Assembly: GCA_002269645.1 (NCBI GenBank)
Contig: NIVC01000773.1
Location: 124,001-188,000, forward strand
Reading direction: 5' to 3'
DNA from: Macrostomum lignano
Lineage: Eukaryota
Length of the DNA: 64,000 bases
A program made the translations under genes and the position numbers. The notes under the pieces are model-generated. The model saw nothing but the letters and a program-made list of their open reading frames with translations. It had not been told where the DNA came from and ran no database searches. Positions 1-45,845 of this stretch are shown here, one piece after another; position 1 is the first letter of the stretch, and every line of letters begins with the position of its first letter.

Positions 1-1735
1 CGGAGAGATGCTAGACCTATCCAGATCGAGAACTAGCCGATATTCAGCCTTCCCAGGAGAGTCATATGAAACGTCGGATACAGTGAAGACGACCGAAAGC
101 AGCGAGTACATGTCGTTCGGATCTCGAACGGAGACGGCTCCTGTCGGTGTTCAGGGCATTGTATCGGGAGCTACTGGGTCACGCGCCGTTAACATCGGCG
201 GATCGGACGGAGAGATGCTAGACTTATCCGGATCGAGAACTAGCCGATATTCGGCCTTCCCAGGAGAGTCGTATGGAACGTCGGATACAGTGACGACGAC
301 CGAAAGCAGCGAGTACAAGTCGTTCGGATCTCGAACGGAGACGGCTCCTGTCGGTGTTCAGGGCATTGTATCGGAAGCTACTGGGTCACGCGCCGTTAAC
401 ATCGGCGGATCGGACGGAGAGATTCTAAACTTATTCGGATCGAGAACTAGCCGATATTCAGCCTTCCCAGGAGAGTCGTATGGAATATCGGATACAGTGA
501 AGACGACCGAAAGCAGCGATTACATGTCGTTCGGATCTCGAACGGAGACGGCTCCTGTCGGTGTTCAGGGCATTGTATCGGAAGCTACTGGGTCACGCGC
601 CGTTAACATCGGCGGATCGGACGGAGAGATGCTAGACTTATCCGGATCGAGAACTAGCCGATATTCGGTCTTCCCAGGAGAGTCGTATGGAACGTCGGAT
701 ACAGTGAAGACGACCGAAAGCAGCGAGTACAAGTCGTTCGGATCTCGAACGGAGACGGCTCCTGTCGGTGTTCAGGGCATTGTATCGGAAGCTACTGGGT
801 CACGCGCCGTTAACATCGGCGGATCGGACGGAGAGATTCTAAACGTATTCGGATCGAGAACTAGCCGATATTCAGCCTTCCCAGGAGAGTCGTATGGAAT
901 ATCGGATACAGTGAAGACGACCGAAAGCAGCGAGTACATGTCGTTCGGATCTCGAACGGAGACGGCTCCTGTCGGTGTTCAGGGCATTGTATCGGGAGCT
1001 ACTGGGTCACGCGCCGTTAACATCGGCGGATCGGACGGAGAGATGCTAGACTTATTCGGATCGAGAACTAGCCGATATTCAGCCTTCCCAGGAGAGTCGT
1101 ATGGAACGTCGGATACAGTGAAGACGACCGAAAGCAACGAGTACAAGTCGTTCGGATCTCGAACGGAGACGGCTCCTGTCGGTGTTCAGGGCATTGTATC
1201 GGAAGCTACTGGGTCACGCGCCGTTAACATCGGCGGATCGGATGGAGAGATGCTAGACCTATCCGGATCGAGAACTAGCCAATATTCGGCCTTCCCAGGA
1301 GAGTCGTATGGAACGTCGGATACAGTGAAGACGACCGAAAGCAGCGAGTACAAGTCGTTCGGATCTCGAACGGAGACGGCTCCTGTCGGTGTTCAGGGCA
1401 TTGTATCGGAAGCTACTGGGTCACGCGCCGTTAACATCGGCGGATCGGACGGAGAGATGCTAGACTTATCCGGATCGAGAACTAGCCGATATTCGGCCTT
1501 CCCAGGAGAGTCGTATGGAACGTCGGATACAGTGAAGACGACCGAAAGCAGCGAGTACAAGTCGTTCGGATCTCGAACGGAGACGGCTCCTGTCGGTGTT
1601 CAGGGCATTGTATCGGAAGCTACTGGGTCACGCGCCGTTAACATCGGAGGATCGGATGGAGAGATGCTAGACCTATCCGGATCGAGAACTAGCCGATATT
1701 CAGCCTTCCCAGGAGAGTCGTTTGGAACATCAGGT
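1..1735 (+). repeat. 207-bp coding tandem repeat, ~8.4 copies
   Basis: Direct periodicity in both DNA and protein. Confidence 0.95.
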
Positions 1736-1819
1736 GCCGTCACCCACTTCAGTGAAAGTGACAGTGCTAGTCCTCTATTCTCATTCACGGGTGGCCGCAT
1801 GCGAAATATTGTAGACTAG
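8..1819 (+). CDS. 3' exon (partial, open at window start) of a Ser/Gly/Thr-rich protein with ~8.4 tandem 69-aa repeats; paralogue of the last exon of the plakin gene at 21913-22900
   Basis: 603-aa ORF. ATGCTAGAC recurs at 8 and 215 (207-bp period). Unit MLDLSGSRTSRYSAFPGESYGTSDTVKTTESSEYKSFGSRTETAPVGVQGIVSEATGSRAVNIGGSDGE. All variants are substitutions with no indels. A unique tail ends in TAG at 1819. Confidence 0.75.
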   Translation: MLDLSRSRTSRYSAFPGESYETSDTVKTTESSEYMSFGSRTETAPVGVQGIVSGATGSRAVNIGGSDGEMLDLSGSRTSRYSAFPGESYGTSDTVTTTESSEYKSFGSRTETAPVGVQGIVSEATGSRAVNIGGSDGEILNLFGSRTSRYSAFPGESYGISDTVKTTESSDYMSFGSRTETAPVGVQGIVSEATGSRAVNIGGSDGEMLDLSGSRTSRYSVFPGESYGTSDTVKTTESSEYKSFGSRTETAPVGVQGIVSEATGSRAVNIGGSDGEILNVFGSRTSRYSAFPGESYGISDTVKTTESSEYMSFGSRTETAPVGVQGIVSGATGSRAVNIGGSDGEMLDLFGSRTSRYSAFPGESYGTSDTVKTTESNEYKSFGSRTETAPVGVQGIVSEATGSRAVNIGGSDGEMLDLSGSRTSQYSAFPGESYGTSDTVKTTESSEYKSFGSRTETAPVGVQGIVSEATGSRAVNIGGSDGEMLDLSGSRTSRYSAFPGESYGTSDTVKTTESSEYKSFGSRTETAPVGVQGIVSEATGSRAVNIGGSDGEMLDLSGSRTSRYSAFPGESFGTSGAVTHFSESDSASPLFSFTGGRMRNIVD

Positions 1820-4050
1820 ATTTCTTTACCTGAGCTGGGAATTCTCAGGTAGGAAAGAAGCTGAGCGAAAAGTTAAAGAATTTTGGAACCTGCGCTCACT
1901 AACGTAAATTGTTTGGAGGAAATGGCTTTTTAGCTTTTTAGTACTTTTTTTGTAACAGTTGTATTACCTTTTTCATATCGCCCTTCATATTTTAGCGGAA
2001 AAACGTGGCGTTGTTTTAATTTCCCCAGCGAATTCTTTACTAGCGAAAGTGTCTCCAAATTAACCATAGTGTTTGTATGGAATGTGTTTTAATTTTCCCT
2101 TGGAAGTTTTTAGCCGTTGTTATTGTTGGTTTATTGAGTCCTACTGGTAGGCCTTAAGCAAATTTTCAATCACAATACCGTAGAAACATAACAATTAGAT
2201 GGTTCACTCTGGAGCATTTTTGCTCTACATCTCAGGCTGGAATTGAAAAAGCAGAGAAGTTGCCAAAACTTCAGTTAGTGAGCTTTAGTGAGCAGTATAT
2301 TGTATTGTCCAAGTCAATATCGTACTTGCAGATAGGAAAAGTATTAATGGCTGCTACTGAATCTGTGGTGAGTGGACTATCTAGTGTTTAAACTACTCGT
2401 AGTACCTTTATCCTTATCCAAATTTGAAATTAATTTGTGTTAATACATGAATTGCACGTCGCGTGTTATATTTTATGCTTAGAAAAGTAACCCCACACCA
2501 AGACCATTTTTTCCATCTAACAACATCAATATTTATTTTTTTAGCGCCTTAGTGGAGTTTCCAATAAAAATATATACTTTACTCTCTCGATGACTAGGTT
2601 GACTAGATGCTTTACGCTACATTAACACAGCATTGATTGATTCCGCACCGCTCACCACTCAAGTACTCGTAGAAGTAAAAAGCTCATTAGCGAATTAAGG
2701 AATTTTCCTGTTCCTAGCAGCAGCAAATTTTACTTGAGCCATCTCTGGCTTGCGTTATATCATGATAGAACATTCACAACGATATGATTATGTGCCGTCG
2801 TGCCGAGATCTCCCACAAAAAAGACCGAAGACTTCGTGACCTATGCCGCTGAGAAAACTTCACAACAAGCGATTTTTCCCGCACCCTTGCAGCAAGAACC
2901 CATGTTCTATCTAACTATCTATCTATTGTATATACGCTAGTATAAACGTCTGTATTAACGTTTGAAGTTTGAGAAGACCCACTCGTACTCTCATCTGAAG
3001 TTAAACTAGAAAAATCAGGAGGACTGTCGCAGCCGTCACGAAAAAAAGTACTAAACCGATATTTCCACTGTGGACTGGCCTTCGTCAGGGCTGCCAGCAT
3101 ATTCAACAAAATGCAATGAAAACATATGGTCATTGAGGACTAAAAATATGCATTGAGAGTTAATTTATACCCGGTAAAGTTGTGGTGACCCCGTCGCACG
3201 CTGCTCCATTGCTCACTCTATTGATAAAGATTTAATCAATGCCATCAGTGAGGCTAGGCAGTTTAGAGGGCAGAGAATGTCCTTTAGAGAGCGTGTTCGA
3301 GTGTACGCAGCAGCAGTTGCCCTTGTATATGGTTTCAGACAACAGCGCGAATTTCGTGTACAATGTTTGTAGACCTGGGGACAGTGCTATGAAGCTCGGA
3401 TTAGGAGTCAAGTGTCTCCTAACTCTTGATGCAGCAGCGCGTGCTAAGAAGAAGGAGCAAAGTCTGGGAGTTAGAAGTGAATGAGGCCATGTTAGGGGTG
3501 AACTTAAAAAAGTGAGCGTATTATAAAACTAGGACTAAATATTCCACTCCTAACTGCTAAGCCAAGCGTTCAAGAGCCAAGATCAATCAAGAATAAGTCG
3601 TAGAGCATAAGAGACTGCACAAGACTGCAAATCAACTTAGACTTGATTTAGATTGCGTAACCATATTGTTAATTGCTATGACTTCTTCTCTAGAGGAAGA
3701 CAGTAAGACAAGATCAACAATGGTGGATTGTATATAGTAGGTAACCTCGTGAAATAATGGCCAAACGCGAGTGCGCTAACGCACAGCGATGGTTCAATGA
3801 AAAATTTTTTAGCGGTCATTTCAGCCTATTTGAGTTTCGCGCGGCCATTGTTTCAGGCTAGCGAGGGCGGCCATTATTCAGCCCAACTGAAGGGACAGCT
3901 GGGTTGATTTGACCATAGACTATAAGAAACAGTATAGACTTGAACCAAGTGGTGTTTGGAACTTTGCATAAATGATCAAGAATTCAGACTTTAGTTGAAG
4001 TTTGGTCCCTAAAGCTTTCTGCTTTTTAACAGTTATTTTTATTTTTTATT

Positions 4051-4269
4051 ATGGTGCTTATTACCTGGTCCAATCTTCCATTGGACAGCCTAAACGAAGT
4101 GAGTAGCAATGAATTAGAGTTTCTTTCTGAGATAAGTTTAAACGAGCATCAAAATGACACCGGCTTGAGCGAGTTCATCAGCTGGATTGAAAATCCTGCG
4201 GCTGAGTCTGCAGACCTGCCCGAGCTGCCTATCGACGAAGATGCAATCTGCTCAATATTGCCCTTGTAG
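4051..4269 (+). mobile_element. 5'-terminal fragment of a Crypton-like tyrosine recombinase ORF
   Basis: MVLITWSNLPLDSLNEVSSNELEFLSEI...LPELP aligns with the N-terminus of the 31232-32341 ORF (MPLINWKNLPVDSLDGVSSTELDFLSEL...LPEL). CCATAGAC motif upstream at 3913-3920. Confidence 0.7.
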
Positions 4270-4298
4270 TACCTCAGTAGTACCTCAGGTACTGCTTC

Positions 4299-4969
4299 TG
4301 TCGTGCAGGCAGTTGTCGTGCAGGCAGTTGTGCAGTCAGTTGTCGTGCAGGCAGTTGTCGTGTTGTCGTGCAGGCAGTTGTCGTGCAGTCAGTTATCGTG
4401 CAGGCAGTTATCGTGCAGGCAGTTGTCGTGCAGGCAGTTGTCGTGTTGTCGTGCAGGCAGTTGTCGTGCAGGCAGTTGTCGTGCAGGCAGTTGTCGTGTT
4501 GTCGTGCAGGCAGTTGTCGTGTTGTCGTGCAGGCAGTTGTCGTGTTGTCGTGCAGGCAGTTGTCGTGTTGTCGTGCAGGCAGTTGTCGTGTTGTCGTGCA
4601 GGCAGTTGTCGTGTTGTCGTGCAGGCAGTTGTCGTGTTGTCGTGCAGGCAGTTGTCGTGTTGTCGTGCAGGCAGTTGTCGTGCAGGCAGTTGTCGTGTTG
4701 TCGTGCAGGAAGTTGTCGTGTTGTCGTGCAGGCAGTTGTCGTGCAGGCAGTTGTCGTGTTGTCGTGCAGGCAGTTGTCGTGTTGTCGTGCAGGCAGTTGT
4801 CGTGTTGTCGTGCAGGCAGTTGTCGTGCAGGCAGTTGTCGTGCAGGCAGTTGTCGTGTTGTCGTGCAGGCAGTTGTCGTGCAGGCAGTTGTCGTGCAGAC
4901 AGTTGTCGTGCAGGCAGTTGTCGTGCAGGCAGTTGTCGTGCAGGCAGTTGTCGTGCAGACAGTTGTCGT
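4299..4969. repeat. Compound minisatellite of 15-bp (GTTGTCGTGCAGGCA) and 8-bp (GTTGTCGT) units
   Basis: Visible periodicity; all three + frames are open only because the units contain no stops. Confidence 0.95.
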
Positions 4970-5790
4970 AGAAGTAGAACTATCTAAATTTGGGGGATCT
5001 GGAACGAGGTTGCTCTGAAAAAAACTTCCGCCCCCCCCCCCGAAGACAGGTGGCCTAATCTAAGGAAAAATCCTCCTGACTACACATTAGCATACCCGTG
5101 TCCGTCCCAAAAATTTAAATGAGAGAGAGAGAGAGAGAAGGCTGTGACAAAAAATAAATGGGTAAGCTTCACAAACGTCCTCCAGCACAATTTCTGGCAA
5201 AATTGCGCAGGTCTTGCACGGCAGCAAGGCACAAGAAGGGTTAGGAAGCGGGTGGTGACTGGTTCTGTGCAAAGTTCGAGGCATTTTGTCTCCTTCTTTC
5301 TTCCTTACTTTTTGCTAGCATAACAATAGCTTATAGCTAAAAACCTAAAGAACTGTGGAGTGTGGAGGCAGGACAAGGTTAGGTTGTGAGCTCTGAGTTG
5401 CCGCACCGAACTCCGCTCGCACCAGCAAAATCTTAGACGGCTGAGACTGCTAGACGTTCTATCGTTCAGAGGAGACCAGCCGCCAGAGGAGACACAAGTC
5501 TGGCAGCTTGGGGGGGGGGGGGTGGCAGAGGAGACTTCCAGTCCGCTTTGTCTGAGTCGGGTTTGGTTCAGTGCAGCCCGCGCCATTGTGCGTAGCTTCT
5601 GTCTCGCCTAGCCATACACTTTTAAGGCTGCATGCGTAACAAGAAGCTTCTAGAAGCAGCTCTTCGGCTGTCTGCCGAGTTTCTCTCTGGTTTGGACTGA
5701 GCAGTTAACACCTAAACTTCTTGTCGGTCACTCGGTACATTCGAAACTCGACTGGCTGCTCAGCTTGCTGTTTATTCGTGCTGAAAACGG

Positions 5791-6066
<276 letters not shown>

Positions 6067-7060
6067 ATTTTAGCTATGAAATATTTTCATAAAGTTTTAA
6101 TTTTTGTGGCCACAAGATAGATAGATGTAACGCCTCGGGCAACCTTTTGTTGGAGTTTTTCATCTTCTTATTTTTTGCCCCGGCATTGATATTAGACTGC
6201 TTTCAGAAGAGGTGCAATAGAATCTCTTCTCTTTTGAGCTCGTGTACTCGTAGCAGCTCGCTGTGGCCCAGCGCGCGTGAATCTCAGACTGAGGTTGCCG
6301 GCGGGGACAGGCTTGGAAAAGGATTGTAACAGGTGGTATGTCTGGATTTTATGGAGTATTACCGAGCACGGTTGAGGGACAATGGACAGAAACTCTGGCT
6401 GTGGCGAACGTATAAATACAGACGGCGATCTAATTTAGCAAATTTTCTAAGGCGCCTGAAAGAGAATTTTTTTCTATTCGATTCTAGCATCAAAGACAAG
6501 CACTAGGTCTACTGAGATAAAATTATCCAATAGGGTTGTTCTGATACATTATTTTGCTATTTTGGTTTATCTATCAAAGAAACTAAGAAACTCCATCAGG
6601 TTGCCAATTAGGTAAGTCCTGGCTGCACACAGTTGTTTGAGCCTGAGAAAGACTTATTTCTCGGTACATGAAGAGCAACTCCATCATGAAATCTGTCCAA
6701 ACTCACCCTCAATATGCTAGTTCAATCGAAGTCTCCTGCTGTGTATTTATAATGGCCCTCTCTCTTTAAATGAATCTCGTACTCCAGTAAGAGTTGAGTA
6801 GCTTGGGGAATGCCAAGTTTTTGGGCTTTAGAACAGAAATTTCACTTGGAGCCAAAATGAGAACATCGATGGACTGTCTCGGCTTTTCCGTTGGACTGGT
6901 CTGGCAAGTTGCCGATTGCTTCAGGCTCCGCTCCAGAGCCCTCAGTTGACATCTCCTCTATTGGCTTTTGAGGCTCCTGGAGTAAACTTTTGGATAGTGC
7001 TTCTTTTGTTTCAGCCAATGATGTTTGTGTCAATAGGGGACACCAACTATTCATCCGCAG

Positions 7061-10000
7061 GTGAATTCGGTCAAGATGTCGTTCATGCTGGCGGCGCATC
7101 AGCAGGAGGTTGAGAAATGGCTGCAGGACAACCGAGATGACGTGGAGTCAGCCGCCATCGGCTGCACTCACCAGGCGCTGCTGTTTCAGCAAACCAAGCA
7201 GGCGGTCCTGCTGGAGGAGATCCAAGCGCTTGAGAGCAGGCTGGACGAGTCCAACAAGTCAGCGGCAGCGTCCCTCACCAAGCTGAAGGCAATGGAGAGT
7301 CAGATTGGCGTAAACCAGCAGGCGCTGACTTACCTTCGACAGGTGACGTCGCTTGAGACGGCATTCGTGTCCACGGGTCAGAAAGTGATGGAGAAGGCAC
7401 TGCAGATGTCCAAAGTTACTGACGGAGTCGTTCTGGAAGCCAAGAAGGTGAGAAAAGAGCCTTCATTTTATTGACAGTACATAAACGAGTCAAGGACAAC
7501 TAAAGCAACGTCTATACAGGACGCTGCACTCGAAATCTATGGAAAATGTTTTGAAGGCCACTTTTTGCCGAAAAATACACTACGGAGATAGGAAGTTTTA
7601 ATTTTTTAAGCTTCAGCTTCAGCTTCGTTCAGAAAATTAGAATTTATGTTATTTTTCATTCTGGTACAACTGCTCATGTCCTGTGCCTAAAAATCATAAA
7701 AATGGCACGGCTCGGCTCATTGGTTTTATTAATCTATTTTGGCATTCTTAGCTGACTGTGTAACAATATGTGTATCAGGGGTGATAAAATAGATTCATGT
7801 ACGACTCGTAACCAAAGATTCGATAACATAGAATCGTAATTTCCTAAAACTTCCTAAAACTCTTCCTAAAATCCTAAAACTTCCTATCTTCGTAGTGTAT
7901 TTTTTGACGAAAAGTGGCCTTCAAAACATTATCCATAGATTTCGAGTGTTGCGTCCTTCTACTCTAGTAGTCCTTTGAACGAGTATGCTTGAGCAATGAG
8001 CAGCTATTAAATTTGAACCCAACACATATCAATAAGACATAAGTAGTTTTTACCGGCGACATTTCACATCGTGCCAGACAAAAACTTTATATAGTAAATT
8101 AAAATGCAATTTTTTTGTTTGAAGTTGGAGTTAGAAGAGCGTAAAATCTGGAATTGAGTGTAATAGTGTAAGCAGCAAGAAGCTGAACTTTTAGGTGTAT
8201 ATGCATCAAACCTCGAAAATATTTCCTCCCAGGAGCTGTCGGCCGAGGTCCACGGCACCTGGTGCTGGGTGAGCCAGCTGGCCGACCTGAACCGGCTCCA
8301 CACCCGCAACGCCGCGGACTACCAGGCCTTCCATCACAGCGCCTACGAGCTCAACGCCATGCTGAACAGCCGAGCCAGCAGCAGCAGCGCCGCCATTGCC
8401 GCCATTCCCGCCAACGGGATGCTGGGCTCCATCAAGCGCATAAACACCGTGCTCACTGTAAGTAACCTCTTGTCAGTTTCAATATGGGCTTGAAATACTC
8501 AAATCGCACACTTCAAAAGTAAAAGCCTCCTCGAACCTCTGCAGGACAACTTGGCCCAGTTCAACCGGCTGTGGCAGCTGTCAGTCGACCTGATGCAGCG
8601 CAGCCGAGCTGTGGTGCCGCTGCACCTGCGTTTCAGCACTGACGCCATCCCGTTCGCGGGCAAGAACGTGTTCAAGTTCGATGACGGCGAGGTAAGTGCC
8701 AACTGTATTGCAGAGTGAATTGCATATTTGATAGCGCGCTCGCCCCATCATATTCGGACACCTGCGAGTGGAAGTTGCGCCTGAAAACCTCTGCACACTA
8801 AACTGGCTACCTTACGAGTAGCGAGGAGAGAAAATTAATTATGAAATTTAGAATACCGATAAATGGCGATAATAAATATGAGTGTCTTAGAATGTGTGTA
8901 CGGTTGTGACCCTGAATTTTAAGGGACCGGACTATGTTTGCTGGTGTAGTCCTGGCTTGTCTGTAGGGACTGGTCCTATTGCTATCTTATTCTTCTGCCT
9001 CTCTGACGATGGCACCAAGCGTCTATACTTCTAATCAACTAAATAAGTCGAAGGTTCGGTAACTTTCTCTCGATCTTCAACCCTCAACGCGGATGTTTAT
9101 TTCTATTCCTGATGGTTGCAATTTCAATAGATAATGAGCATGCAAATGTTGGAAGCAATTTAGTGGAAAGAAAAAGGGCTACTTATCTATACTGGTGTAC
9201 CTCGATCTTGACGTCTCTAGATGGTCTCTTTGTTAGATCGGGATGGAGTCTCGGCTCGATTCAGATGAAGTTGTTTCCTTGACGGTTTTTTTTAGTCTTT
9301 TAGTGACGTTGGATGAGAACTCTGGATGGAGGGCGGAGTAGGAGTAGAGGAGTAGCTGGAGCAAAAGGAGGAGCAAGAGAAGGCGGGAAAAAGGAGGCGG
9401 GAGCTTTATTTTCACTGAACGCTAGTATTAGTAGTATATATATGATTTCTATAACGCCATATATATATGGTGTTGGCTTCCCGCAATAGGATCTTTATTG
9501 CCGCAGAAGCATGCGCTGTACTTTCCAGATAGAAAAACTTTCAAGGTTCGCATTAGACTCAAAAATAGCATTGGGCATAACATGTATAAATTAAGATCAC
9601 TGCACTAGTTTTTCTCCTATACATTAAAATCCAGGCCTTCTGAGCTGCGCATTTGCCAGTATTTAACTAAACATTTACACAAAAACTACTACCGTACCGT
9701 ACCGACCTCTCCCCCCACAGACGGTCCTGGAGCCGGGAGAGCAGGTGACTGTCATCGACAACTCTCAGTCCTACAGGTGGACGGTGAGGCGCTCGGACGG
9801 AAGCGAGGTCGAAGTGCCCAGCACCTGCATCTGGCTGCCGCCGGCCGATCCGCAGGCAGTGGAGCTCGCTATCGGGTTTGTGGGGCTTTTGACAGAACTG
9901 GCATTTATCTCATTGTCTTTTTTATTTTGTCAAAGCCTCATGTTTATTTATTTATGAAAGTGGCTTATATAGTAAAAGATAAACATCACAAGTGACGATA

Positions 10001-13000
10001 AGGAAAAACATCTCTGCACATTTTGCCACTCCCTGGCTCTTTGGGAATCGAATTTCTTCCGTTTACAGGCTGAGAAGAAAGCTTCTGAACACCTGGTCTC
10101 AGGTTCTGAACCAACTGCGTCAATGGAGTGCCGAGTTCTTTGATTCCTATCTGAGCCGCATGATCCACAACCCAGTGGTGAGTAATATTACACTTTTTAT
10201 ACCTACGTGTAAAGTTTGCGGCCTCTTTTCATCGTTTTTTGAATACCAAAACACAGGTAGATGTTGTTATCGGAATAAATCGTTTTTAAAGTTTAATTCT
10301 CAGCCAAATAGTTGAACTTCCTTCATCAGATGATCAGCTCAAAAATCAAAGACGGATCTCTCGCGTTCTTCGAGAGGTTGCGCCTGTCCAGCCGCACCTT
10401 CTTGGGCGTCAACGATCAGCAGGCAGAGCGCATTGACAGGTCCATTGGCAAGGTGGTTGACAGGATTACAATAACCGGTGCGTGTTGGATAAATTTGCTG
10501 GGTTTTGCTTTAAACATTGCAGCCAGTTCAGTTTAGACTTCTGTGATAGAGCTATATTTTTCGGGACTAGAATCTGACAACATTTCAAATTGATATTGTT
10601 TGTTTTAATTCACCAAAGCAGACATGCAGACCTTTGATACGATTTTTTAGATGGCCCGATGGACTCTTTAGTTGAGAGCGAGCTAGTCGTCCTGCAGACG
10701 TGCCTGATGAAGCTGGAAGAGCACCTGAACCAGTGGCGCCATTGCTCAAGAGAAGCTCTCGAAGCCGAAAATCAGGAGCGAAGTCAGACTGACCTATCTA
10801 AGGAATCCTCGGAGGTCCTGGCACGCATTGAACTGCTTTCGTAAGTCTAATGGACTCAAAAAAATTTTTCATGTATTTTAAACCTAAAAAAATATTAGGT
10901 ACTCAGGATTTTTATTTAGGAATAGAAAAATGTCGACCAAGGTATGGCATGACTCGTCAGTTGTGTTGTATACCAATGGATGAAGCAATAGAAAGGATCG
11001 CTGATCTGAAAGCGAGTCTATGGCCAATACAGGGCCAGCACCCTGGGCTGACCAACAATGGAATCGCAGAATATTTTGCTGAGCTTGGTGTCCCAAAATC
11101 AACCATTTATGGAATTCTGGATCGCTACTCAGCAACTGGAGAAGATTCTGTGCTACGCAAGGAGGGGTCAGGACGACCAGCTACCAAGGTCACTGCCACT
11201 TTGATGGAGAAGATGTCAAATGATGCCAGGACGGGTCTGTCCCAGCGCGAAATTGCAAGCAAATATGACATCAGCCAGCCGTGCGTCAACGAGATTCTCA
11301 AGAAGCAGGGACTGAGTGCATACAAGAAAGAAAAAGTGCCATTTGTGTCGTTGGAGCAGAAAGAGCGCCAGCGTGTGAAGATTGACAGGCTCTACCGTGC
11401 TGTGCTGGCAGGAGATGACGGCGGACTGGACATTGTCATGGACGATGAATCGTACTTGTCTCTGTCATCCTATGTCATCCCTGGTAACAGGTTCTATTAT
11501 GCAACAGCTCGAGGTGATGCACCTGATGAGGTCTGGTGTTCAAATTTGAGGCCAAAGTCTTGGTCTGGCTGCTGGCCATCAGCAAGAAGGGCATGTCCAA
11601 GGTCTTCTTTTGCGACGGCAGCTCAATGAACAAAGAGATCTACATAAGAGAGTGCATTCACAAGCGTCTATTGCCATTTATTAAGGAGCAGCATGCTGAC
11701 CGCAACTACCTGTTCTGGCCTGACCTGGTGAGCTGTCACTATGCTCGTGACGTCATTGACACATTTGAAGAGGAAGGTGTCAATTTTGTCAGCAAGGAGC
11801 TCAATCCTCCCAATGTACCACAGCTGCGACCAATTGAAAACTTCTGGGGGATGTTGAAGCTGGGGGGTGTCACAATTGGACGGCGGACAGTCTGGAACAG
11901 CTGGAAAATCGCATTCGCTACTGCCTCCGCCAGGTGGATCTGCACTGTGTACAGGAGATGATGACCAATGTCAAGTCCGGGATTCACCGAGCTCGGGCTA
12001 ATGGTGTCGGAGCCGTTTGGCAATGAGCCAGACAATCCCTTATATACTGAACTAAATCCAAGTTAAAAGACACGCGTTCAATTTGTTAATGTTGTCTTAC
12101 TAAAACAAATAAAAATGTCCAAATTTTTACCAATCACCCAGTACTTCCTAAAAGTTGGGATATTCCCCTCATGGATTTCATTGGCTGCTGGAATTTAACA
12201 ATAGACCCCCCTAAGTTCTTACTGGCTGAAGCTTGTACGCGAGGGAAATTCCAAAGTCACGATTAACGTTAGACATTAATAACTGCTTTTTTCCTCTGGG
12301 CCACGACGGCTTAAGGGATTTAGAACAAGAGAAAAAGTTATCTACGAGTAGTATGTTAGTGTTACAGCCTAGCATGCGCGTTAATCGTGAATTCCCCGCA
12401 TACAAGCTTCAGCCATTAAGAACTTAGGGGGACTATTATTCAATTCCGGCAGCCAATGAAATTAATTGGGGGGGAAATCCCAATTTTCAGGAAGTCTTGG
12501 CCATAGACTCGCTTTCAGATGAGCGATTCTTTCTATTCCTTCATCCATGGTTGTACCCCCCCCCGGGCTGCGTAGCTGGGAGACACCCAGGTCCCGCCTA
12601 TTCCTGTCCCTAACGCTGCAAGAGTTCACAGCGGCCTCGAGCTGGCGAAAGTTCACCGGCCCGACCTCTGGGTGCTGCGAGAGTTCACAGTAAAACTTCC
12701 GGCTGGCAAAAGTTCGCTTGTCGGCCCCTGAACACTGCGAGAGTTCACAGTATAGCTCGATCCCCGCGCGGCACCCCGGAAGGAAATGAGACTCACACCT
12801 GCAGTTCGATCCAGCTCCAACAACATGCGGTATACCCCGAACTGAACGTTACGTGTGTGTATTGATATTAACTGCACTGCCGTCAGCGGGACAAGGGGGG
12901 GGGCGGGACGGGGCGGGGGGCGCGCATTAAATAGCAAGGCAAAAGGGGGAGGAGGGTAAACAGACAGACAATAAGCAAGTACAAACCACCCTGCGGCCAG

Positions 13001-16000
13001 CCAATCACAAGCCGCCAGCCGGGGGAGGGGTGGAGCAAATTGAGCCGGCCCGCACACGAGACCGGGGGCCTGGGCAGGCCGAGGCCAGACTAGGGAGAGA
13101 CTTAAGCCCCCAAACCCCAGCCCGACCGGCCGGCACAACCCAGCGCGATGGGGGGAGAGAAAGAGAGAGAGAGAGAAAAGGGCCGGGAGGGTGAAGCCCT
13201 CGCAGACGCAGCACGGCACAACAGTTATTGGCTTTTAACTGGTTTATCAAGCATAAAGCAATGCTTTCTGGAGAATTTCTTAGTCGTAAGGTCCAGTTAG
13301 TTTCATTGATACGACAGAACTTAATTACATAAATAGCTCGAGCACTAATCATAAATTATTTTGCAATGGTTATTGGAGGACTACTTTCATAAGAACCCCC
13401 ACAGCAACCCCAATTCAACAGGTATGCATACCGAAAATGCATAAAAATACTTCTAGAAAATCAAAGATTCTTTCGTGAAAGTCATCACTGTACTTTAAAA
13501 GAATAGAGGAAACAGAGCCAAATTCTGCCCTACTATGAAATAGAAGCCCGCAAACAAACCTAAACGTGGCATGAATTTGTTGAACTTGCAGACAGCTGCA
13601 AAAGGAGTCACAGTCTCAGTTCCGTGACCTGCAGCGAAGCATTTCTAATTGGAGGCTTCAAGATGTGGCGTCGAAGTTCCAAGTCACCAAGGTAATTAAT
13701 ATTTAAACTGCATGCTGTAGCTTCATTGGCTTTATTCAAGTCAGCTAATCGGTATGTTTTACTTCGATCCCACAGATTTCGCGACAGCCGCTGTTCTACG
13801 ACAAATCATCGCTTTCCGTAATGGACAGCGTCACAAGAGCGTCGGGGAAATCGGAAGAGAGACAGACAGCAGAGTGGCGGCTGATTGGAACAATCCAAGG
13901 GAGAGCAGAAGGAAACTCAGCGGTGAATGTGACAGCAAGCGGTTGTCACGCATCTACAAATCAATATCACATTGGATTCAAATCTGCAGAAGAAGTAACA
14001 AGCTCGAGAGCTGCCGTATACAGGTCTGAAGAGAGACCAAAATCAGAAAGTAAAAAGATTCAAGTAGTTTCTAGCGGCTGTCATAAAGAAATTTTGCCAA
14101 GTAAAGAGCCAGACACTTCGTCGCAGGACTTCCAAGCGTTGGTGCTGAAGTACGTTGAGCAGCACAAGTCGGAATTCTTCGCCATATTTGCTACATGGAG
14201 CGATTTTCAAACAGAAATTCGTCGCTACGTACGCGAGCATGCTTGGGAGTTTTCTGATATCTTCTCCTGGAGCGGGTTCAGCGACCAAGTTCGAAAGCAC
14301 GTTTTGGAGCACAAAGAGGAATTCATTGCGCTGCTTGGCCTAAACAAAGAAGTGAACGTAGAGCGACGCATTACACTTGAAAGGCCACCAGTGCAAGTGT
14401 CGCAAACTCAGTGCTGGAGAGAGATCAAAAAAAGTGAATCTGCTGTCAGTTTTGAACAAAGACAACAAAAACCTGCAATTTCAGTCACAGAAGCCTACAG
14501 AGAACAAGCCGATAAGAAGACTGAACTGAAGAGTGCAGGATGCTTCATAGAAAAAGTCTTCGTCAGTGCCAAAGTTCAGAAAACAACCCCAGAGCTAATA
14601 ATATTTTCTCACGGGGCATTCAAAGAACGCACATTTTCTACCGCAAGCATCAAAGTCGAAAACAAGTCGAACACAACCGGAAGTGGGTGCTACTCAGAGT
14701 GGCAATTATCGGAAAAATCGGTTTACTTCAAAGAGACTATAAAACAAAATGTAACTTCCTGCCATTCCGAAACACAGTATCAGGACTCTCGAGCCAAATT
14801 CGATATTTCAAGTCCAAAAATAAGCGCAAGCGGCTGTTTCAAGCAAATCACGCTCGAGCCGGCTTCCGTGACGTGCGATTGGAGGCCGAAATATGACAAC
14901 TCCGGCTGCTACTACGAGACAAGTACCAAGCCAGTAGCGCAAAGTTCATCTCACCGGCGCCAACGCTTACTGCAAGCGGCTGTTTCAAGCAAATCACGCT
15001 CGAGCCGGCTTCCGTGACGTGCGATTGGAAGCCGAAATATGACAACTCCGGCTGCTACTACGAGACAAGTTACCAAGCCAGTAGCGCAAAGTTCATCTTA
15101 CCGGCGCCAACGCTTACTGCAAGCGGCTGTTTCAAGCAAATCACGCTCGAGCCGGCTTCCGTGACGTGCGATTGGAGCCGAAATATGACAACTCCGGCTG
15201 CTACTACGAGACAAGTTACCAAGCCAGTAGCGCAAAGTTCATCTTACCGGCGCCAACGCTTACTGCAAGCGGCTGTTTCAAGCAAATCACGCTCGAGCCG
15301 GCTTCCGTGACGTGCGATTGGAGGCCGAAATATGACAACTCCGGCTGCTACTACGAGACAAGTTACCAAGCCAGTAGCGCAAAGTTCATCTTACCGGCGC
15401 CAACGCTTACCGCAAGCGGCTGTTTCAAGCAAATCACGCTCGAGCCGGCTTCCGTGACGTGCGATTGGAGGCCGAAATATGACAACTCCGGCTGCTACTA
15501 CGAGACAAGTTACCAAGCCAGTAGCGCAAAGTTCATCTTACCGGCGCCAACGCTTACTGCAAGCGGCTGTTTCAAGCAAATCACGCTCGAGCCGGCTTCC
15601 GTGACGTGCGATTGGAGGCCGAAATATGACAACTCCGGCTGCTACTACGAGACAAGTTACCAAGCCAGTAGCGCAAAGTTCATCTTACCGGCGCCAACGC
15701 TTACTGCAAGCGGCTGTTTCAAGCAAATCACGCTCGAGCCGGCTTCCGTGACGTGCGATTGGAGGCCGAAATATGACAACTCCGGCTGCTACTACGAGAC
15801 AAGTTACCAAGCCAGTAGCGCAAAGTTCATCTTACCGGCGCCAACGCTTACTGCAAGCGGCTGTTTCAAGCAAATCACGCTCGAGCCGGCTTCCGTGACG
15901 TGCGATTGGAGGCCGAAATATGACAACTCCGGCTGCTACTACGAGACAAGTTACCAAGCCAGTAGCGCAAAGTTCATCTTACCGGCGCCAACGCTTACCG

Positions 16001-19000
16001 CAAGCGGCTGTTTCAAGCAAATCACGCTCGAGCCGGCTTCCGTGACGTGCGATTGGAGGCCGAAATATGACAACTCCGGCTGCTACTACGAGACAAGTTA
16101 CCAAGCCAGTAGCGCAAAGTTCATCTTACCGGCGCCAACGCTTACGCAAGCGGCTGTTTCAAGCAAATCACGCTCGAGCCGGCTTCCGTGACGTGCGATT
16201 GGAGGCCGAAATATGACAACTCCGGCTGCTACTACGAGACAAGTTACCAAGCCAGTAGCGCAAAGTTCATCTTACCGGCGCCAACGCTTACCGCAAGCGG
16301 CTGTTTCAAGCAAATCACGCTCGAGCCGGCTTCCGTGACGTGCGATTGGAGGCCGAAATATGACAACTCCGGCTGCTACTACGAGACAAGTTACCAAGCC
16401 AGTAGCGCAAAGTTCATCTTACCGGCGCCAACGCTTACTGCAAGCGGCTGTTTCAAGCAAATCACGCTCGAGCCGGCTTCCGTGACGTGCGATTGGAGGC
16501 CGAAATATGACAACTCCGGCTGCTACTACGAGACAAGTTACCAAGCCAGTAGCGCAAAGTTCATCTTACCGGCGCCAACGCTTACTGCAAGCGGCTGTTT
16601 CAAGCAAATCACGCTCGAGCCGGCTTCCGTGACGTGCGATTGGAGCCGAAATATGACAACTCCGGCTGCTACTACGAGACAAGTTACCAAGCCAGTAGCG
16701 CAAAGTTCATCTTACCGGCGCCAACGCTTACTGCAAGCGGCTGTTTCAAGCAAATCACGCTCGAGCCGGCTTCCGTGACGTGCGATTGGAGGCCGAAATA
16801 TGACAACTCCGGCTGCTACTACGAGACAAGTTACCAAGCCAGTAGCGCAAAGTTCATCTTACCGGCGCCAACGCTTACCGCAAGCGGCTGTTTCAAGCAA
16901 ATCACGCTCGAGCCGGCTTCCGTGACGTGCGATTGGAGGCCGAAATATGACAACTCCGGCTGCTACTACGAGACAAGTTACCAAGCCAGTAGCGCAAAGT
17001 TCATCTTACCGGCGCCAACGCTTACGCAAGCGGCTGTTTCAAGCAAATCACGCTCGAGCCGGCTTCCGTGACGTGCGATTGGAGGCCGAAATATGACAAC
17101 TCCGGCTGCTACTACGAGACAAGTTACCAAGCCAGTAGCGCAAAGTTCATCTTACCGGCGCCAACGCTTACCGCAAGCGGCTGTTTCAAGCAAATCACGC
17201 TCGAGCCGGCTTCCGTGACGTGCGATTGGAGGCCGAAATATGACAACTCCGGCTGCTACTACGAGACAAGTTACCAAGCCAGTAGCGCAAAGTTCATCTT
17301 ACCGGCGCCAACGCTTACCGCAAGCGGCTGTTTCAAGCAAATCACGCTCGAGCCGGCTTCCGTGACGTGCGATTGGAGGCCGAAATATGACAACTCCGGC
17401 TGCTACTACGAGACAAGTTACCAAGCCAGTAGCGCAAAGTTCATCTTACCGGCGCCAACGCTTACTGCAAGCGGCTGTTTCAAGCAAATCACGCTCGAGC
17501 CGGCTTCCGTGACGTGCGATTGGAGGCCGAAATATGACAACTCCGGCTGCTACTACGAGACAAGTTACCAAGCCAGTAGCGCAAAGTTCATCTTACCGGC
17601 GCCAACGCTTACCGCAAGCGGCTGTTTCAAGCAAATCACGCTCGAGCCGGCTTCCGTGACGTGCGATTGGAGGCCGAAATATGACAACTCCGGCTGCTAC
17701 TACGAGACAAGTTACCAAGCCAGTAGCGCAAAGTTCATCTTACCGGCGCCAACGCTTACCGCAAGCGGCTGTTTCAAGCAAATCACGCTCGAGCCGGCTT
17801 CCGTGACGTGCGATTGGAGGCCGAAATATGACAACTCCGGCTGCTACTACGAGACAAGTTACCAAGCCAGTAGCGCAAAGTTCATCTTACCGGCGCCAAC
17901 GCTTACTGCAAGCGGCTGTTTCAAGCAAATCACGCTCGAGCCGGCTTCCGTGACGTGCGATTGGAGGCCGAAATATGACAACTCCGGCTGCTACTACGAG
18001 ACAAGTTACCAAGCCAGTAGCGCAAAGTTCATCTTACCGGCGCCAACGCTTACTGCAAGCGGCTGTTTCAAGCAAATCACGCTCGAGCCGGCTTCCGTGA
18101 CGTGCGATTGGAGGCCGAAATATGACAACTCCGGCTGCTACTACGAGACAAGTTACCAAGCCAGTAGCGCAAAGTTCATCTTACCGGCGCCAACGCTTAC
18201 CGCAAGCGGCTGTTTCAAGCAAATCACGCTCGAGCCGGCTTCCGTGACGTGCGATTGGAGGCCGAAATATGACAACTCCGGCTGCTACTACGAGACAAGT
18301 TACCAAGCCAGTAGCGCAAAGTTCATCTTACCGGCGCCAACGCTTACCGCAAGCGGCTGTTTCAAGCAAATCACGCTCGAGCCGGCTTCCGTGACGTGCG
18401 ATTGGAGGCCGAAATATGACAACTCCGGCTGCTACTACGAGACAAGTTACCAAGCCAGTAGCGCAAAGTTCATCTTACCGGCGCCAACGCTTACTGCAAG
18501 CGGCTGTTTCAAGCAAATCACGCTCGAGCCGGCTTCCGTGACGTGCGATTGGAGGCCGAAATATGACAACTCCGGCTGCTACTACGAGACAAGTTACCAA
18601 GCCAGTAGCGCAAAGTTCATCTTACCGGCGCCAACGCTTACTGCAAGCGGCTGTTTCAAGCAAATCACGCTCGAGCCGGCTTCCGTGACGTGCGATTGGA
18701 GGCCGAAATATGACAACTCCGGCTGCTACTACGAGACAAGTTACCAAGCCAGTAGCGCAAAGTTCATCTTACCGGCGCCAACGCTTACTGCAAGCGGCTG
18801 TTTCAAGCAAATCACGCTCGAGCCGGCTTCCGTGACGTGCGATTGGAGGCCGAAATATGACAACTCCGGCTGCTACTACGAGACAAGTTACCAAGCCAGT
18901 AGCGCAAAGTTCATCTTACCGGCGCCAACGCTTACCGCAAGCGGCTGTTTCAAGCAAATCACGCTCGAGCCGGCTTCCGTGACGTGCGATTGGAGGCCGA

Positions 19001-22000
19001 AATATGACAACTCCGGCTGCTACTACGAGACAAGTTACCAAGCCAGTAGCGCAAAGTTCATCTTACCGGCGCCAACGCTTACTGCAAGCGGCTGTTTCAA
19101 GCAAATCACGCTCGAGCCGGCTTCCGTGACGTGCGATTGGAGGCCGAAATATGACAACTCCGGCTGCTACTACGAGACAAGTTACCAAGCCAGTAGCGCA
19201 AAGTTCATCTTACCGGCGCCAACGCTTACCGCAAGCGGCTGTTTCAAGCAAATCACGCTCGAGCCGGCTTCCGTGACGTGCGATTGGAGGCCGAAATATG
19301 ACAACTCCGGCTGCTACTACGAGACAAGTTACCAAGCCAGTAGCGCAAAGTTCATCTTACCGGCGCCAACGCTTACCGCAAGCGGCTGTTTCAAGCAAAT
19401 CACGCTCGAGCCGGCTTCCGTGACGTGCGATTGGAGGCCGAAATATGACAACTCCGGCTGCTACTACGAGACAAGTTACCAAGCCAGTAGCGCAAAGTTC
19501 ATCTTACCGGCGCCAACGCTTACTGCAAGCGGCTGTTTCAAGCAAATCACGCTCGAGCCGGCTTCCGTGACGTGCGATTGGAGGCCGAAATATGACAACT
19601 CCGGCTGCTACTACGAGACAAGTTACCAAGCCAGTAGCGCAAAGTTCATCTTACCGGCGCCAACGCTTACCGCAAGCGGCTGTTTCAAGCAAATCACGCT
19701 CGAGCCGGCTTCCGTGACGTGCGATTGGAGGCCGAAATATGACAACTCCGGCTGCTACTACGAGACAAGTTACCAAGCCAGTAGCGCAAAGTTCATCTTA
19801 CCGGCGCCAACGCTTACCGCAAGCGGCTGTTTCAAGCAAATCACGCTCGAGCCGGCTTCCGTGACGTGCGATTGGAGGCCGAAATATGACAACTCCGGCT
19901 GCTACTACGAGACAAGTTACCAAGCCAGTAGCGCAAAGTTCATCTTACCGGCGCCAACGCTTACCGCAAGCGGCTGTTTCAAGCAAATCACGCTCGAGCC
20001 GGCTTCCGTGACGTGCGATTGGAGGCCGAAATATGACAACTCCGGCTGCTACTACGAGACAAGTTACCAAGCCAGTAGCGCAAAGTTCATCTTACCGGCG
20101 CCAACGCTTACTGCAAGCGGCTGTTTCAAGCAAATCACGCTCGAGCCGGCTTCCGTGACGTGCGATTGGAGGCCGAAATATGACAACTCCGGCTGCTACT
20201 ACGAGACAAGTTACCAAGCCAGTAGCGCAAAGTTCATCTTACCGGCGCCAACGCTTACTGCAAGCGGCTGTTTCAAGCAAATCACGCTCGAGCCGGCTTC
20301 CGTGACGTGCGATTGGAGGCCGAAATATGACAACTCCGGCTGCTACTACGAGACAAGTTACCAAGCCAGTAGCGCAAAGTTCATCTTACCGGCGCCAACG
20401 CTTACCGCAAGCGGCTGTTTCAAGCAAATCACGCTCGAGCCGGCTTCCGTGACGTGCGATTGGAGGCCGAAATATGACAACTCCGGCTGCTACTACGAGA
20501 CAAGTTACCAAGCCAGTAGCGCAAAGTTCATCTTACCGGCGCCAACGCTTACCGCAAGCGGCTGTTTCAAGCAAATCACGCTCGAGCCGGCTTCCGTGAC
20601 GTGCGATTGGAGGCCGAAATATGACAACTCCGGCTGCTACTACGAGACAAGTTACCAAGCCAGTAGCGCAAAGTTCATCTTACCGGCGCCAACGCTTACC
20701 GCAAGCGGCTGTTTCAAGCAAATCACGCTCGAGCCGGCTTCCGTGACGTGCGATTGGAGGCCGAAATATGACAACTCCGGCTGCTACTACGAGACAAGTT
20801 ACCAAGCCAGTAGCGCAAAGTTCATCTTACCGGCGCCAACGCTTACTGCAAGCGGCTGTTTCAAGCAAATCACGCTCGAGCCGGCTTCCGTGACGTGCGA
20901 TTGGAGGCCGAAATATGACAACTCCGGCTGCTACTACGAGACAAGTTACCAAGCCAGTAGCGCAAAGTTCATCTTACCGGCGCCAACGCTTACTGCAAGC
21001 GGCTGTTTCAAGCAAATCACGCTCGAGCCGGCTTCCGTGACGTGCGATTGGAGGCCGAAATATGACAACTCCGGCTGCTACTACGAGACAAGTTACCAAG
21101 CCAGTAGCGCAAAGTTCATCTTACCGGCGCCAACGCTTACCGCAAGCGGCTGTTTCAAGCAAATCACGCTCGAGCCGGCTTCCGTGACGTGCGATTGGAG
21201 GCCGAAATATGACAACTCCGGCTGCTACTACGAGACAAGTTACCAAGCCAGTAGCGCAAAGTTCATCTTACCGGCGCCAACGCTTACCGCAAGCGGCTGT
21301 TTCAAGCAATCATCTTACCAAAACTCTGCTGCTATATTTGTGCCAAAAGTCGATGTAACTGCGTCGGGCTGCCTTAAAGAGCTTTCATTTGATAATTCGT
21401 CGGTGACAGCGACCGCAAATGTGACAGTCGCTGCCTCTGGATTCTTTAGTGAGTCCTCTTTCTCATCTTCGGTCGTCAAATTTACTGATGTTTCAACAAA
21501 AGTTTCTGCTTCTGGTTGCTTCCATGAAGAATCCTCTAAGTCTGAGATGGCTTCAAGTGGATGTTTCAAGGAAATTCAGAGGAGCACATCGTCTGCAAGA
21601 TTTCTCTTCCAACTGCCAACTACGGCATCCGGAACGTTCAACGAGCGAGTCGCTGTTGAAGAGTTAAAAATAAGCACACCGCCTTCTATGCCAGTCATAC
21701 GAAGCATGCCAATCGTTGATTCGGGCTGCGAGTTCGTTGGATCGACTGCTGAACTCATTTCAGAAAGTCGCGCTGACGAAAGACAAGTTCAGCAGCAGCA
21801 CAGTAGCAGCATGTAAGTTTCGTGTATGATGAGTTCCTATTGAATACTTAAATTCTAAGTTTCTTTTTCGTTTCCGAACGTTCCTCACAACACGCGAGAT
21901 TTTGCATTTTAGATATGCACTAAGCGTCGGTCAGAGCAGTTCTGCCAGTAGGGCGACCAGGACCTCCGAGGCACAGACTGATTTGGACTACAAGTCCGCA

Positions 22001-22900
22001 TTGTGGAACATGTTTGTATTGAAGAACGGTCGCGTTGACATCAACCTCTCCTTCATAGTTTCGTATTTCGGAGTCGAATCTTTCGCTCGCGAGTACATGC
22101 TACTTCGCGAATTTCGAAACGTTGCAACGCAAGTTGGTGAAGGAGGGGAAGTCGGATTCGCGACGGCGTCACCCAGAAGCGTCAATCTCGTTCAGAGCAG
22201 GTCGTTTGAGTCGCAGTCGAGTGCTTCTCGTGTCTATGGATCTGGTGTTGTCAACATTGGTGGATCTAGCGGTGGGATGTTAGACCTTTCTAATACAAAC
22301 ACCAGCAGGATCTCGACTATCCAGAGACAGTCATCCGGAACATCTGGAGTCGTGAGGACTAATGGAAGCAACGAGTTTACGTCATTTGGCTCACGAACAG
22401 AATCGGTTCCTGGTGATATCCAGGGAGTTGCATCTGGAGATACTAGATCAAGTGTAGTCAGCATTGGCGGATCAGACGGAGAAATGTTGGACCTGTCCAG
22501 TTCGTTCGCCACCAGGCTTCCATCAGTCCAGAGACAAATAGAATTTAATAATTTTTCTGGTGCACATGCCGATGTTTCCGACCTGTCCGGTGTGATCAGT
22601 TCTGCAAGCGGTACGTCTGCTATTCAGCGGCAGTCGTCAGGCCGTTCAGGTGAAAGGATCGTGACGCAGAGCAGCGGCAGCGGCATCGTCAATATGTCTG
22701 AGACGGTCAGCTCCGGTTCGCGAGGCTTCGCAGTGTCTGGGGACGGCCTGTCCAGCGTTTACCGATCGGTCTCTGGAATCGACGGCTCTGATGGCAGTGT
22801 GCAGGCAGCCCTGGCCTCCATGGTGAGCGTAGGCGAAAGTAACAGCGGCATTACTCGACTCTCCACCCTGGAGGGTCGCATGCTGAACCTGTCCGACTAG
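7061..22900 (+). CDS. Giant (~3,500 aa) plakin-family protein: spectrin-repeat/SH3 plakin domain + Cys-containing 49-aa repeat block + Ser/Gly-rich tail
   Basis: Exons 7061-7447, 8233-8457, 8545-8691, 9721-9875, 10069-10177, 10330-10477, 10651-10840, 13592-13691, 13776-21812, 21913-22900. All junctions are GT-AG and phase-compatible. Plakin signatures: WCWVSQLADLNRLHTRNAADYQAF and SRAVVPLHLR...TVLEPGEQVTVIDNSQSYRWTVRRSDGSEVEVPSTCIWLPPADPQAVE (plakin SH3). The big exon has five -1 frameshifts; adding 5 nt gives 8042 = 3n+2, matching the phase-2 intron 21813-21912. The start is uncertain (ATG 7076 or an upstream exon). Confidence 0.8.
7517..7958. mobile_element. MITE with ~80-bp terminal inverted repeats, in a plakin intron
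   Basis: CAGGACGCTGCACTCGAAATCTATGGAAAATGTTTTGAAGGCCAC...GATAGGAAGTTTTA at 7517-7598 is the reverse complement (few mismatches) of 7875-7958. Confidence 0.8.
11040..12143 (+). mobile_element. 5'-truncated, frameshifted IS630-Tc1-mariner transposase of the DD37E type
   Basis: HTH region, IVMDDESY, FWPDLVSCH...PPNVPQLRPIENFW with 37 residues between the second D and E. Split across ORFs 10850-11629 and 11536-11961. Probable right end ...CCAATCACCCAGTA at 12143. Confidence 0.9.
12200..12437. mobile_element. Small MITE-like foldback element
   Basis: AATAGACCCCCCTAAGTTCTTACTGGCTGAAGCTTGTACGCG at left mirrors ...GCATACAAGCTTCAGCCATTAAGAACTTAGGGGGACTATT at right. Confidence 0.75.
14826..21310 (+). 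repeat. 147-bp coding tandem repeat, 44 copies (ASGCFKQITLEPASVTCDWRPKYDNSGCYYETSYQASSAKFILPAPTLT)
   Basis: Unit counted at 147 nt; ~6.5 kb span; lies inside the spliced exon 13776-21812. Confidence 0.97.
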
Positions 22901-28037: not shown

Positions 28038-41875
<13,838 letters not shown>

Positions 41876-44769: not shown

Positions 44770-45845
44770 TAATACTGCAGATTTTAGACGGTAGATTTTG
44801 ATGATGGCAGATTTTAGACAGTAGATTTTGATGATGGCAGATTTTAGACAGTAGATTTTGATGATGGCAGATTTTAGACAGTAGATTTTGATGATGGCAG
44901 ATTTTAGACAGTAGATTTTGATGGCAGATTTTAGACAGTAGATTTTGATGGCAGATTTTAGACAGTAGATTTTGTTGATGGCAGATTTTAGACGGTAGAT
45001 TTTGATGATGGCAGATTTTAGACGGTAGATTTTGATGATGGCAGATTTTAGACGGTAGATTTTGATGATGGCAGATTTTAGACGGTAGATTTTGATGATG
45101 GCAGATTTTAGACGGTAGATTTTGATGATGGCAGATTTTAGACGGTAGATTTTGTTGATGGCAGATTTTAGACAGTAGATTTTGATGATGGCAGATTTTA
45201 GACGGTAGATTTTGATGATGGCAGATTTTAGACAGTAGATTTTGATGATGGCAGATTTTAGACAGTAGATTTTGTTGATGGCAGATTTTAGACAGTAGAT
45301 TTTGATGATGGCAGATTTTAGACAGTAGATTTTGACGATGGCAGATTTTAGCCAGTAGATTTTGTTGATGGCAGATTTTAGACAGTAGATTTTGTTGATG
45401 GCAGATTTTAGACAGTAGATTTTGTTGATGGCAGATTTTAGACGGTAGATTTTGATGGCAGATTTTAGCCCTTAGATTTTGTTGATGGCAGATTTTAGAC
45501 AGTAGATTTTGATGATGGCAGATTTTAGACGGTAGATTTTGATGATGGCAGATTTTAGACAGTAGATTTTGATGGCAGATTTTAGCCCTTAGATTTTGTT
45601 GATGGCAGATTTTAGACAGTAGATTTTGATGATGGCAGATTTTAGACAGTAGATTTTGTTGATGGCAGATTTTAGACAGTAGATTTTGATGATGGCAGAT
45701 TTTAGACGGTAGATTTTGATGATGGCAGATTTTAGACGGTAGATTTTGATGATGGCAGATTTTAGACAGTAGATTTTGACGATGGCAGATTTTAGACGGT
45801 AGATTTTGTTGATGGCAGATTTTAGACGGTAGATTTTGATGATGA
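44770..45845. repeat. 30-bp (27-bp variants) minisatellite GATGGCAGATTTTAGACRGTAGATTTTGAT, ~36 copies
   Basis: Direct inspection. Confidence 0.95.

Follow-up and report, generated by a model that had tools for sequence, protein, structure and literature searches.

Coding repeats amplified in frame are known from the terminal plakin-repeat copies of epiplakin and from the variable-number tandem repeats of involucrin and mucins. Among the plakin cytolinkers, filament binding by the extreme C-terminus of desmoplakin, which is rich in Gly-Ser-Arg (GSR), is regulated through phosphorylation (PMC3807649), and the GAR-GSR region of MACF1 binds microtubules (PMC5979291). A literature search found no paper on Macrostomum plakins. 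Here we analyze 64,000 nucleotides (nt) of the Macrostomum lignano genome (assembly GCA_002269645.1, contig NIVC01000773.1, positions 124,001 to 188,000; the window), which open with a 207-bp tandem array. This array is very likely the coding 3' end of an M. lignano plakin-like gene (gene 1), and comparison with its downstream neighbor (gene 2) supports the view that the two are adjacent, same-strand paralogues that diverged by independent repeat expansions.

Tandem Repeats Finder counted 8.3 copies of the 207-bp unit (96% matches, 0% indels), which is a lower bound, as the array begins at the edge of the window. Of the six reading frames, five are interrupted by 9–31 stops; the remaining one has 0 stops throughout the array and closes at a TAG codon (1817-1819) after a ninth unit that resembles the 69-amino acid (aa) unit with z = 18. 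With a period of 207 = 3 × 69, one open frame and constraint at the protein level, the array has the properties of a coding tandem repeat. Its copies differ from one another by 2–11 nt per 207 nt (96–99% nt identity), and the 20 distinct variants among them comprise 14 non-synonymous (N) and 6 synonymous (S) changes, where 2.9:1 is expected under neutrality. Because of this high identity and near-neutral N:S ratio, the copies are young or homogenized. Unit 2 is nearly identical to unit 4, and unit 3 to unit 5, an alternating likeness which suggests that a block of two units was duplicated.

An earlier note on this DNA had proposed that the 69-aa unit recurs in the last exon of gene 2, so that the two genes share a C-terminal module. 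This was borne out: in a tblastn search of the entire window with the unit, 22214-22696 on the same strand was the sole match outside the array (E = 6e-26), and within the last exon the match covers 22220-22516. The Smith-Waterman score of the match was 263, compared with 57 ± 9 for 500 composition-preserving shuffles. Between the unit and the gene 2 unit (54% aa identity), the score was 174, compared with 34.6 ± 6.7 (z = 20.8), and 0 of 1000 shuffles reached 174. The similarity is therefore not an effect of Ser/Gly composition, a control that the note had called for. The two gene 2 ATG codons named in the note, at 22277 and 22484, are indeed 207 bp apart. In gene 2, a 17-aa unit end and one full unit are followed by a degenerate and a marginal copy; the note's figure of about 1.5 copies describes the clear part of this tail. 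The degenerate unit starts with GEMLDLSS and holds a second TSAIQRQSSG sub-repeat. The marginal remnant scored z = 2.8 against the gene 2 unit (9 of 1000 shuffles), and its similarity to the gene 1 unit was not significant. A common C-terminal motif, GRMxNxxD, was dropped as evidence for the same reason (z = 1.6).

The two tails have also diverged as coding sequences do. Over an ungapped comparison of 99 codons (62% nt and 56% aa identity), the first, second and third codon positions carry 26, 31 and 56 differences, and the proportion of differing sites is 0.26 at non-synonymous (pN) and 0.72 at synonymous (pS) positions. The synonymous distance (dS) is saturated, and its ratio to the non-synonymous distance, dN/dS, is about 0.12. 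The excess at third positions, with pN < pS, shows that both tails evolved as protein in this frame. Because synonymous sites are saturated, the duplication of genes 1 and 2 is old, and purifying selection has acted on the tail since then. The 3' untranslated regions and downstream flanks of the two genes share no similarity, which is compatible with an old duplication but carries no further information.

The neighbor had been called a plakin gene, and our exon model agrees. The model was guided by homology (tblastn with A0A1I8HNL6 and P0001, two database proteins described below, followed by a splice model), and its introns are canonical, in-frame GT-AG introns, including the 100-bp intron before the last exon (21813-21912, GTAAGT..AG, in frame). 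In the spliced model, Pfam SH3_10 (PF17902) scored 41.2 bits over profile positions 1–65 of 65, above the gathering cut-off of 22.8. Among PDB sequences, phmmer matched plectin (3pe0, E = 4.2e-8) and desmoplakin (3r6n, E = 7e-8), each in one alignment of ~186 aa that spans the helices on either side of the SH3 domain. In gene 2, spectrin repeats that are homologues of SR4-SR5 in the solved plakin domains thus flank the SH3 on both sides, and by this sequence evidence gene 2 is a plakin-like gene. The database proteins closest to it, P0001, P0002 and P0003, are all M. lignano fragments named 'SH3_10 domain-containing'. An AlphaFold2 model of P0001, built from a three-sequence alignment, has long helices, four short strands and further helices (mean pLDDT, the model's own confidence score, 41.5), and a Foldseek search of PDB with this low-confidence model gave no match at E ≤ 0.001. 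Pfam matched no CH, EF-hand, GAR or plakin repeat domain in A0A1I8HNL6, in the exons of gene 2 or in the tail of gene 1; as the N-termini are incomplete, a CH domain may lie beyond the sequence at hand. Periplakin likewise is not known to have plakin repeat domains. The start of the first recognized gene 2 exon (≤7061) is a bound and not the 5' end of the gene; an ATG at 2347 followed by GTGAGT was considered as a first exon, found no support and is not claimed.

The large exon of gene 2 carries a second kind of expansion, a 147-bp array at 14825-21309 with 44 copies that are 99% alike and encode Cys-containing repeats of 49 aa. Twenty of its 38 full units equal the consensus. Five units are 146 bp long, with 1-bp deletions in GG, CC or TT runs at about 14924, 15177, 16145, 16645 and 17025; each causes a −1 frameshift, so that the open reading frame (ORF) is broken five times. 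These deletions are probably consensus errors of long-read sequencing, although pseudogenization may be their source instead. The single 83-aa repeat upstream of the array appears by eye to consist of three sub-repeats of ~27 aa, and the 83-aa repeats have no relative among Pfam families or PDB sequences. The 2.7-kb intron at 10841-13591 holds the remnant of a Tc1/mariner-like transposase (ORFs 10850-11629 and 11536-11961, + strand, in two frames), with Pfam matches to HTH_23, HTH_28, HTH_Tnp_Tc3_2 and, weakly, DDE_3.

The closest known relative of gene 1 is UniProt A0A1I8HNL6, a 2314-aa 'SH3_10 domain-containing protein' of M. lignano, together with the fragments A0A1I8GR27 and A0A1I8G4J8. 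Window positions 2-1741 are 93–94% identical to its tail over 580 aa, and its 69-aa consensus unit is identical to that of the window, so that gene 1 appears by sequence to be the gene of A0A1I8HNL6 or a near-identical copy. Because this protein joins a plakin domain to the near-identical array, we take the array in the window to be the tail of a plakin-like paralogue. Our protein searches with the gene 1 tail and the unit profile missed A0A1I8HNL6 because it is the longer member of a 90% cluster that is represented by the shorter fragment P0001; it came to light through the member list of that cluster. Apart from this, a word-indexed protein search with the gene 1 tail gave no match; in an exhaustive HMMER search of 1.84 billion representative proteins, the unit profile retrieved no relative, and PDB sequences gave no match to it. 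A bacterial repeat protein, P0004 (E = 8e-5), gave partial matches of 26 aa only and was judged spurious.

Several points weigh against placing the array in a plakin-like gene on the strength of this protein. A0A1I8HNL6 is an automatic, uncharacterized model from the ML2 assembly, truncated at its C-terminus and visibly chimeric at its N-terminus, and the join between its rod and the array could also be an artefact. The ML2 and Mlig_3_7 assemblies were built from the same PacBio reads, so one does not independently confirm the other (PMC5730564). Finally, the NCBI record annotates neither of the two genes, as protein searches with both returned no self-hits. The first 15 residues of A0A1I8HNL6 are identical to P0002 and P0003 and not to P0001, and its N-terminus suggests that the gene predictor fused it with a third, P0002/P0003-like paralogue, located immediately upstream in the same orientation. 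If so, the family would be a tandem array of at least three genes.

Full-length homology between the paralogues is seen only through A0A1I8HNL6, as the window holds the tail of gene 1 alone. Between A0A1I8HNL6 and gene 2, identity is 77–94% in the best-conserved plakin exons, 33–55% in the rod and 54–56% in the tail unit. The repeat content of the two differs: the gene 1 type has eight 83-aa repeats, no 49-aa repeat that we could see and at least 8.3 (window) or at least 11.7 (A0A1I8HNL6) copies of the 69-aa unit, whereas gene 2 has one 83-aa repeat, 44 of the 49-aa repeat and about 1.5 clear copies of the 69-aa unit. These counts support the suggestion of the earlier note that the two genes expanded their repeats independently. 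The gene 1 protein would then run from a plakin domain, in which an SH3 is inserted among spectrin repeats, through eight 83-aa helical repeats and 8–12 or more near-identical, Ser/Gly/Thr-rich 69-aa units, to a short unique end. Gene 2 would be its diverged paralogue, alike in plakin domain and tail module, in which the 49-aa unit was amplified instead. The gene 1 array probably grew by unequal crossing-over or replication slippage of the in-frame unit. The gene 1 stop and the first recognized gene 2 exon are separated by 5.2 kb (1820-7060) on the same strand; trans-splicing and operons are discussed in papers on M. lignano, and at this spacing co-transcription is conceivable.

We considered whether the array belongs to a plakin gene, or to a gene, at all. 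It is quite unlikely that A0A1I8HNL6 wrongly fuses a plakin-like gene to a separate gene of 69-aa repeats, with the shared module spread as a shuffled exon. The predictor did merge neighbors, as the N-terminal 297 aa of this model come from the post-plakin region of another paralogue. However, the model passes without a break from its last 83-aa repeat into the first partial 69-aa unit, and gene 2, independently, has at a single locus a plakin domain followed by an 83-aa repeat and a unit-bearing tail, connected by canonical in-frame introns. That the array is a non-coding minisatellite with an accidentally open frame is scarcely credible. The window does carry dozens of minisatellites in a genome of which 15% is simple or tandem repeat (PMC5730564), a random 69-codon unit has a roughly 20% chance of some open frame, and the N:S ratio among the copies is near neutral. 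Nevertheless, the unit has its homologue in the last exon of gene 2, with an excess of third-position differences and pN well below pS, the period of the array is a multiple of three, its frame closes in a unique C-terminus and the UniProt model reads it as coding sequence.

The history and size of the array are less settled. An ancient array, kept uniform by gene conversion (concerted evolution) while gene 2 lost or degraded its copies, could stand in place of a recent expansion in gene 1; we regard this as somewhat unlikely. The degenerate copies in the gene 2 tail (22478-22696 and 22697-22897) imply that the ancestor already had several units, and variant patterns common to non-adjacent units fit conversion as well as they fit block duplication. 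Nothing decisive speaks against concerted evolution, since both processes yield the same present-day pattern, but the neighboring genes have not been homogenized with each other, as their saturated dS shows. A partial assembly artefact, in which noisy PacBio reads shaped the copy number and homogeneity of the array, is less probable again. The neighboring 147-bp array with its five frame-breaking 1-bp deletions, the different unit counts of A0A1I8HNL6 (where one unit is a 4-aa deletion variant) and the window, and the known redundancy of the assembly of this highly duplicated genome (PMC5730564) all point that way. In contrast, the 207-bp array is free of indels, its substitutions follow a structured and not a random pattern, and two different assemblers recovered it. 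We favor a coding array in a plakin-like gene that expanded independently of its neighbor. Table 1 gives the coordinates of the features.

Table 1. Positions of features in the window (nt) and in A0A1I8HNL6 (residues).
Feature	Position	Strand	Description or evidence
207-bp tandem array, gene 1	1..1728	+	Eight complete 69-aa units at 2-1657, read from base 2: GEMLDLSGSRTSRYSAFPGESYGTSDTVKTTESSEYKSFGSRTETAPVGVQGIVSEATGSRAVNIGGSD
Terminal ninth unit, gene 1	1658..1819	+	28 unit-like codons, then 25-aa unique C-terminus (..GAVTHFSESDSASPLFSFTGGRMRNIVD)
Plakin-domain exons, gene 2, part 1	≤7061-7447, 8233-8457, 8545-8691, 9721-9875	+	tblastn, splice model
Plakin-domain exons, gene 2, part 2	10069-10177, 10330-10477, 10651-10840, 13592-13691	+	tblastn, splice model
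SH3_10 domain, gene 2	8545-8691 and 9721-9875	+	Pfam
Large exon, gene 2	13776..21812	+	Single 83-aa helical repeat, 147-bp × 44 array
Single 83-aa helical repeat, gene 2	14094-14357	+	Pattern EF..LV.KYVE...EF..IF..WS.F
Last exon, gene 2	21913..22900	+	Carries the shared tail module
17-aa unit end, gene 2	22220..22270	+	SASRVYGSGVVNIGGSS; hmmsearch; ungapped codon alignment
One full 69-aa unit, gene 2	22271..22477	+	hmmsearch 58 bits, hmm positions 1-69; z 20.8
Degenerate unit, gene 2	22478..22696	+	z 5.0-5.9, 0/1000 shuffles
Marginal unit remnant (22697-22897) and C-terminus (..LEGRMLNLSD), gene 2	22697..22900	+	TAG stop 22898-22900
Diverged post-plakin/rod fragment, A0A1I8HNL6	residues 1-297		Start shared with P0002 and P0003
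Plakin domain, A0A1I8HNL6	residues 298-751		SH3_10 at 526-590, 40.1 bits
Eight repeats of about 83 aa, A0A1I8HNL6	residues 843-1511
69-aa array, A0A1I8HNL6	residues 1505-2310		Unit matched twelve times (11.7 copies), window consensus; model then ends
Exon-sized ORF	25379-25777	+	Pfam Sulfotransfer_1, E 7e-19
Exon-sized ORF	46995-47591	-	Pfam Peptidase_C54/Atg4, E 1e-17
Exon-sized ORF	51360-51887	-	Pfam Ribosomal_L6, RPL9-like protein, E 5e-15
Minisatellite, 44 bp × 20	37073-37964
Minisatellite, 30 bp × 36	44777-45844
Minisatellite, 56 bp × 18	51984-52994
Microsatellite, (CTGT)n	47508-48183

What the tail might do can be approached through its position and composition. Ser, Thr and Gly make up 45% of the 69-aa unit, single-sequence AlphaFold2 gave it no secondary structure (mean pLDDT 35.9), and the tripeptide GSR occurs three times in the gene 1 unit, compared with 0.11 expected (P < 5e-5). 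By position and composition, the tail would be an intrinsically disordered, probably phospho-regulated C-terminal extension, akin in its role to the Gly-Ser-Arg-rich tails of desmoplakin, plectin and MACF1, which tunes attachment to cytoskeletal filaments. The number of 69-aa copies would then set the length and reach of the tail, or its valency; such a disordered, regulated tail is our best guess. Other properties of the unit count against the analogy. GSR enrichment does not extend significantly to the gene 2 tail (2 vs. 0.5 expected, P = 0.09), where one GSR alone (FGSRTE) has been kept; the unit is net acidic (−3), unlike the basic GSR tails; and the Uversky charge-hydropathy relation places it marginally on the 'folded' side.

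A bolder proposal, to which we give little credence at present, is that Macrostomum has a lineage-specific tandem family of at least three cytolinkers that retained only the plakin domain and replaced the canonical filament-binding modules with new repeats. The 69-aa unit would in that case be a new multivalent, phospho-regulated module binding filaments or junctions, and its variable copy number would tune how tissues such as the epidermis or the adhesive organs are mechanically coupled. As RNA interference and transgenesis exist for M. lignano, its function is testable.

The locus would illustrate how cytolinkers diversify: after duplication, the plakin domain and the tail module were kept, and each copy amplified a different in-frame unit. 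As neither the 1.84 billion representative proteins nor PDB yielded a relative, the 69-aa unit would be a tail module restricted to this taxon and carried on an ancient scaffold. We regard the case as modestly interesting and unsurprising in kind, a lineage-specific variant of the plakin family; repeat expansions are to be expected in a genome unusually rich in tandem repeats and duplications. The locus does need re-annotation, because the NCBI annotation of Mlig_3_7 includes neither gene and one of the two is frame-broken by probable assembly errors.

Elsewhere in the window, a single-exon, CYP2-like P450 gene at 61177-62748 (− strand) was the sole annotated gene that we traced in this part of the contig; an M. 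lignano paralogue on another contig (BOX15_Mlig029877g1) is 89% identical, which fits the known genome duplication. Between 24000 and 60000, non-coding minisatellites and microsatellites are exceptionally dense. The sulfotransferase, Atg4 and RPL9-like ORFs of Table 1 were not among the called genes in the part of the record examined.

Set beside known plakin cytolinkers such as plectin and desmoplakin, the Macrostomum proteins share SR4-SR5 with an inserted SH3, a very large 3' rod exon and a non-globular C-terminal tail, and by the plakin domain both can be placed in the plakin family on sequence. They differ in that their rod is built from lineage-specific 83-aa or 49-aa repeats, and not from coiled coil or spectrin repeats, and their sequence similarity to vertebrate plakins is very low. 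The available sequence appears to hold no canonical filament-binding module and has lineage-specific repeats instead. Like the GSR elements of desmoplakin, plectin and MACF1, the 69-aa tail lies at the extreme C-terminus, is Gly/Ser-rich and is predicted to be unstructured; however, it has no sequence homology with them, and the resemblance is one of position and composition, not of membership. Finally, as in epiplakin, involucrin and the mucins, a unit with a length divisible by three underwent tandem amplification in a terminal exon, probably recently, with copy numbers that differ between paralogues. The Macrostomum unit is unrelated to those, and here two adjacent paralogues amplified different units.

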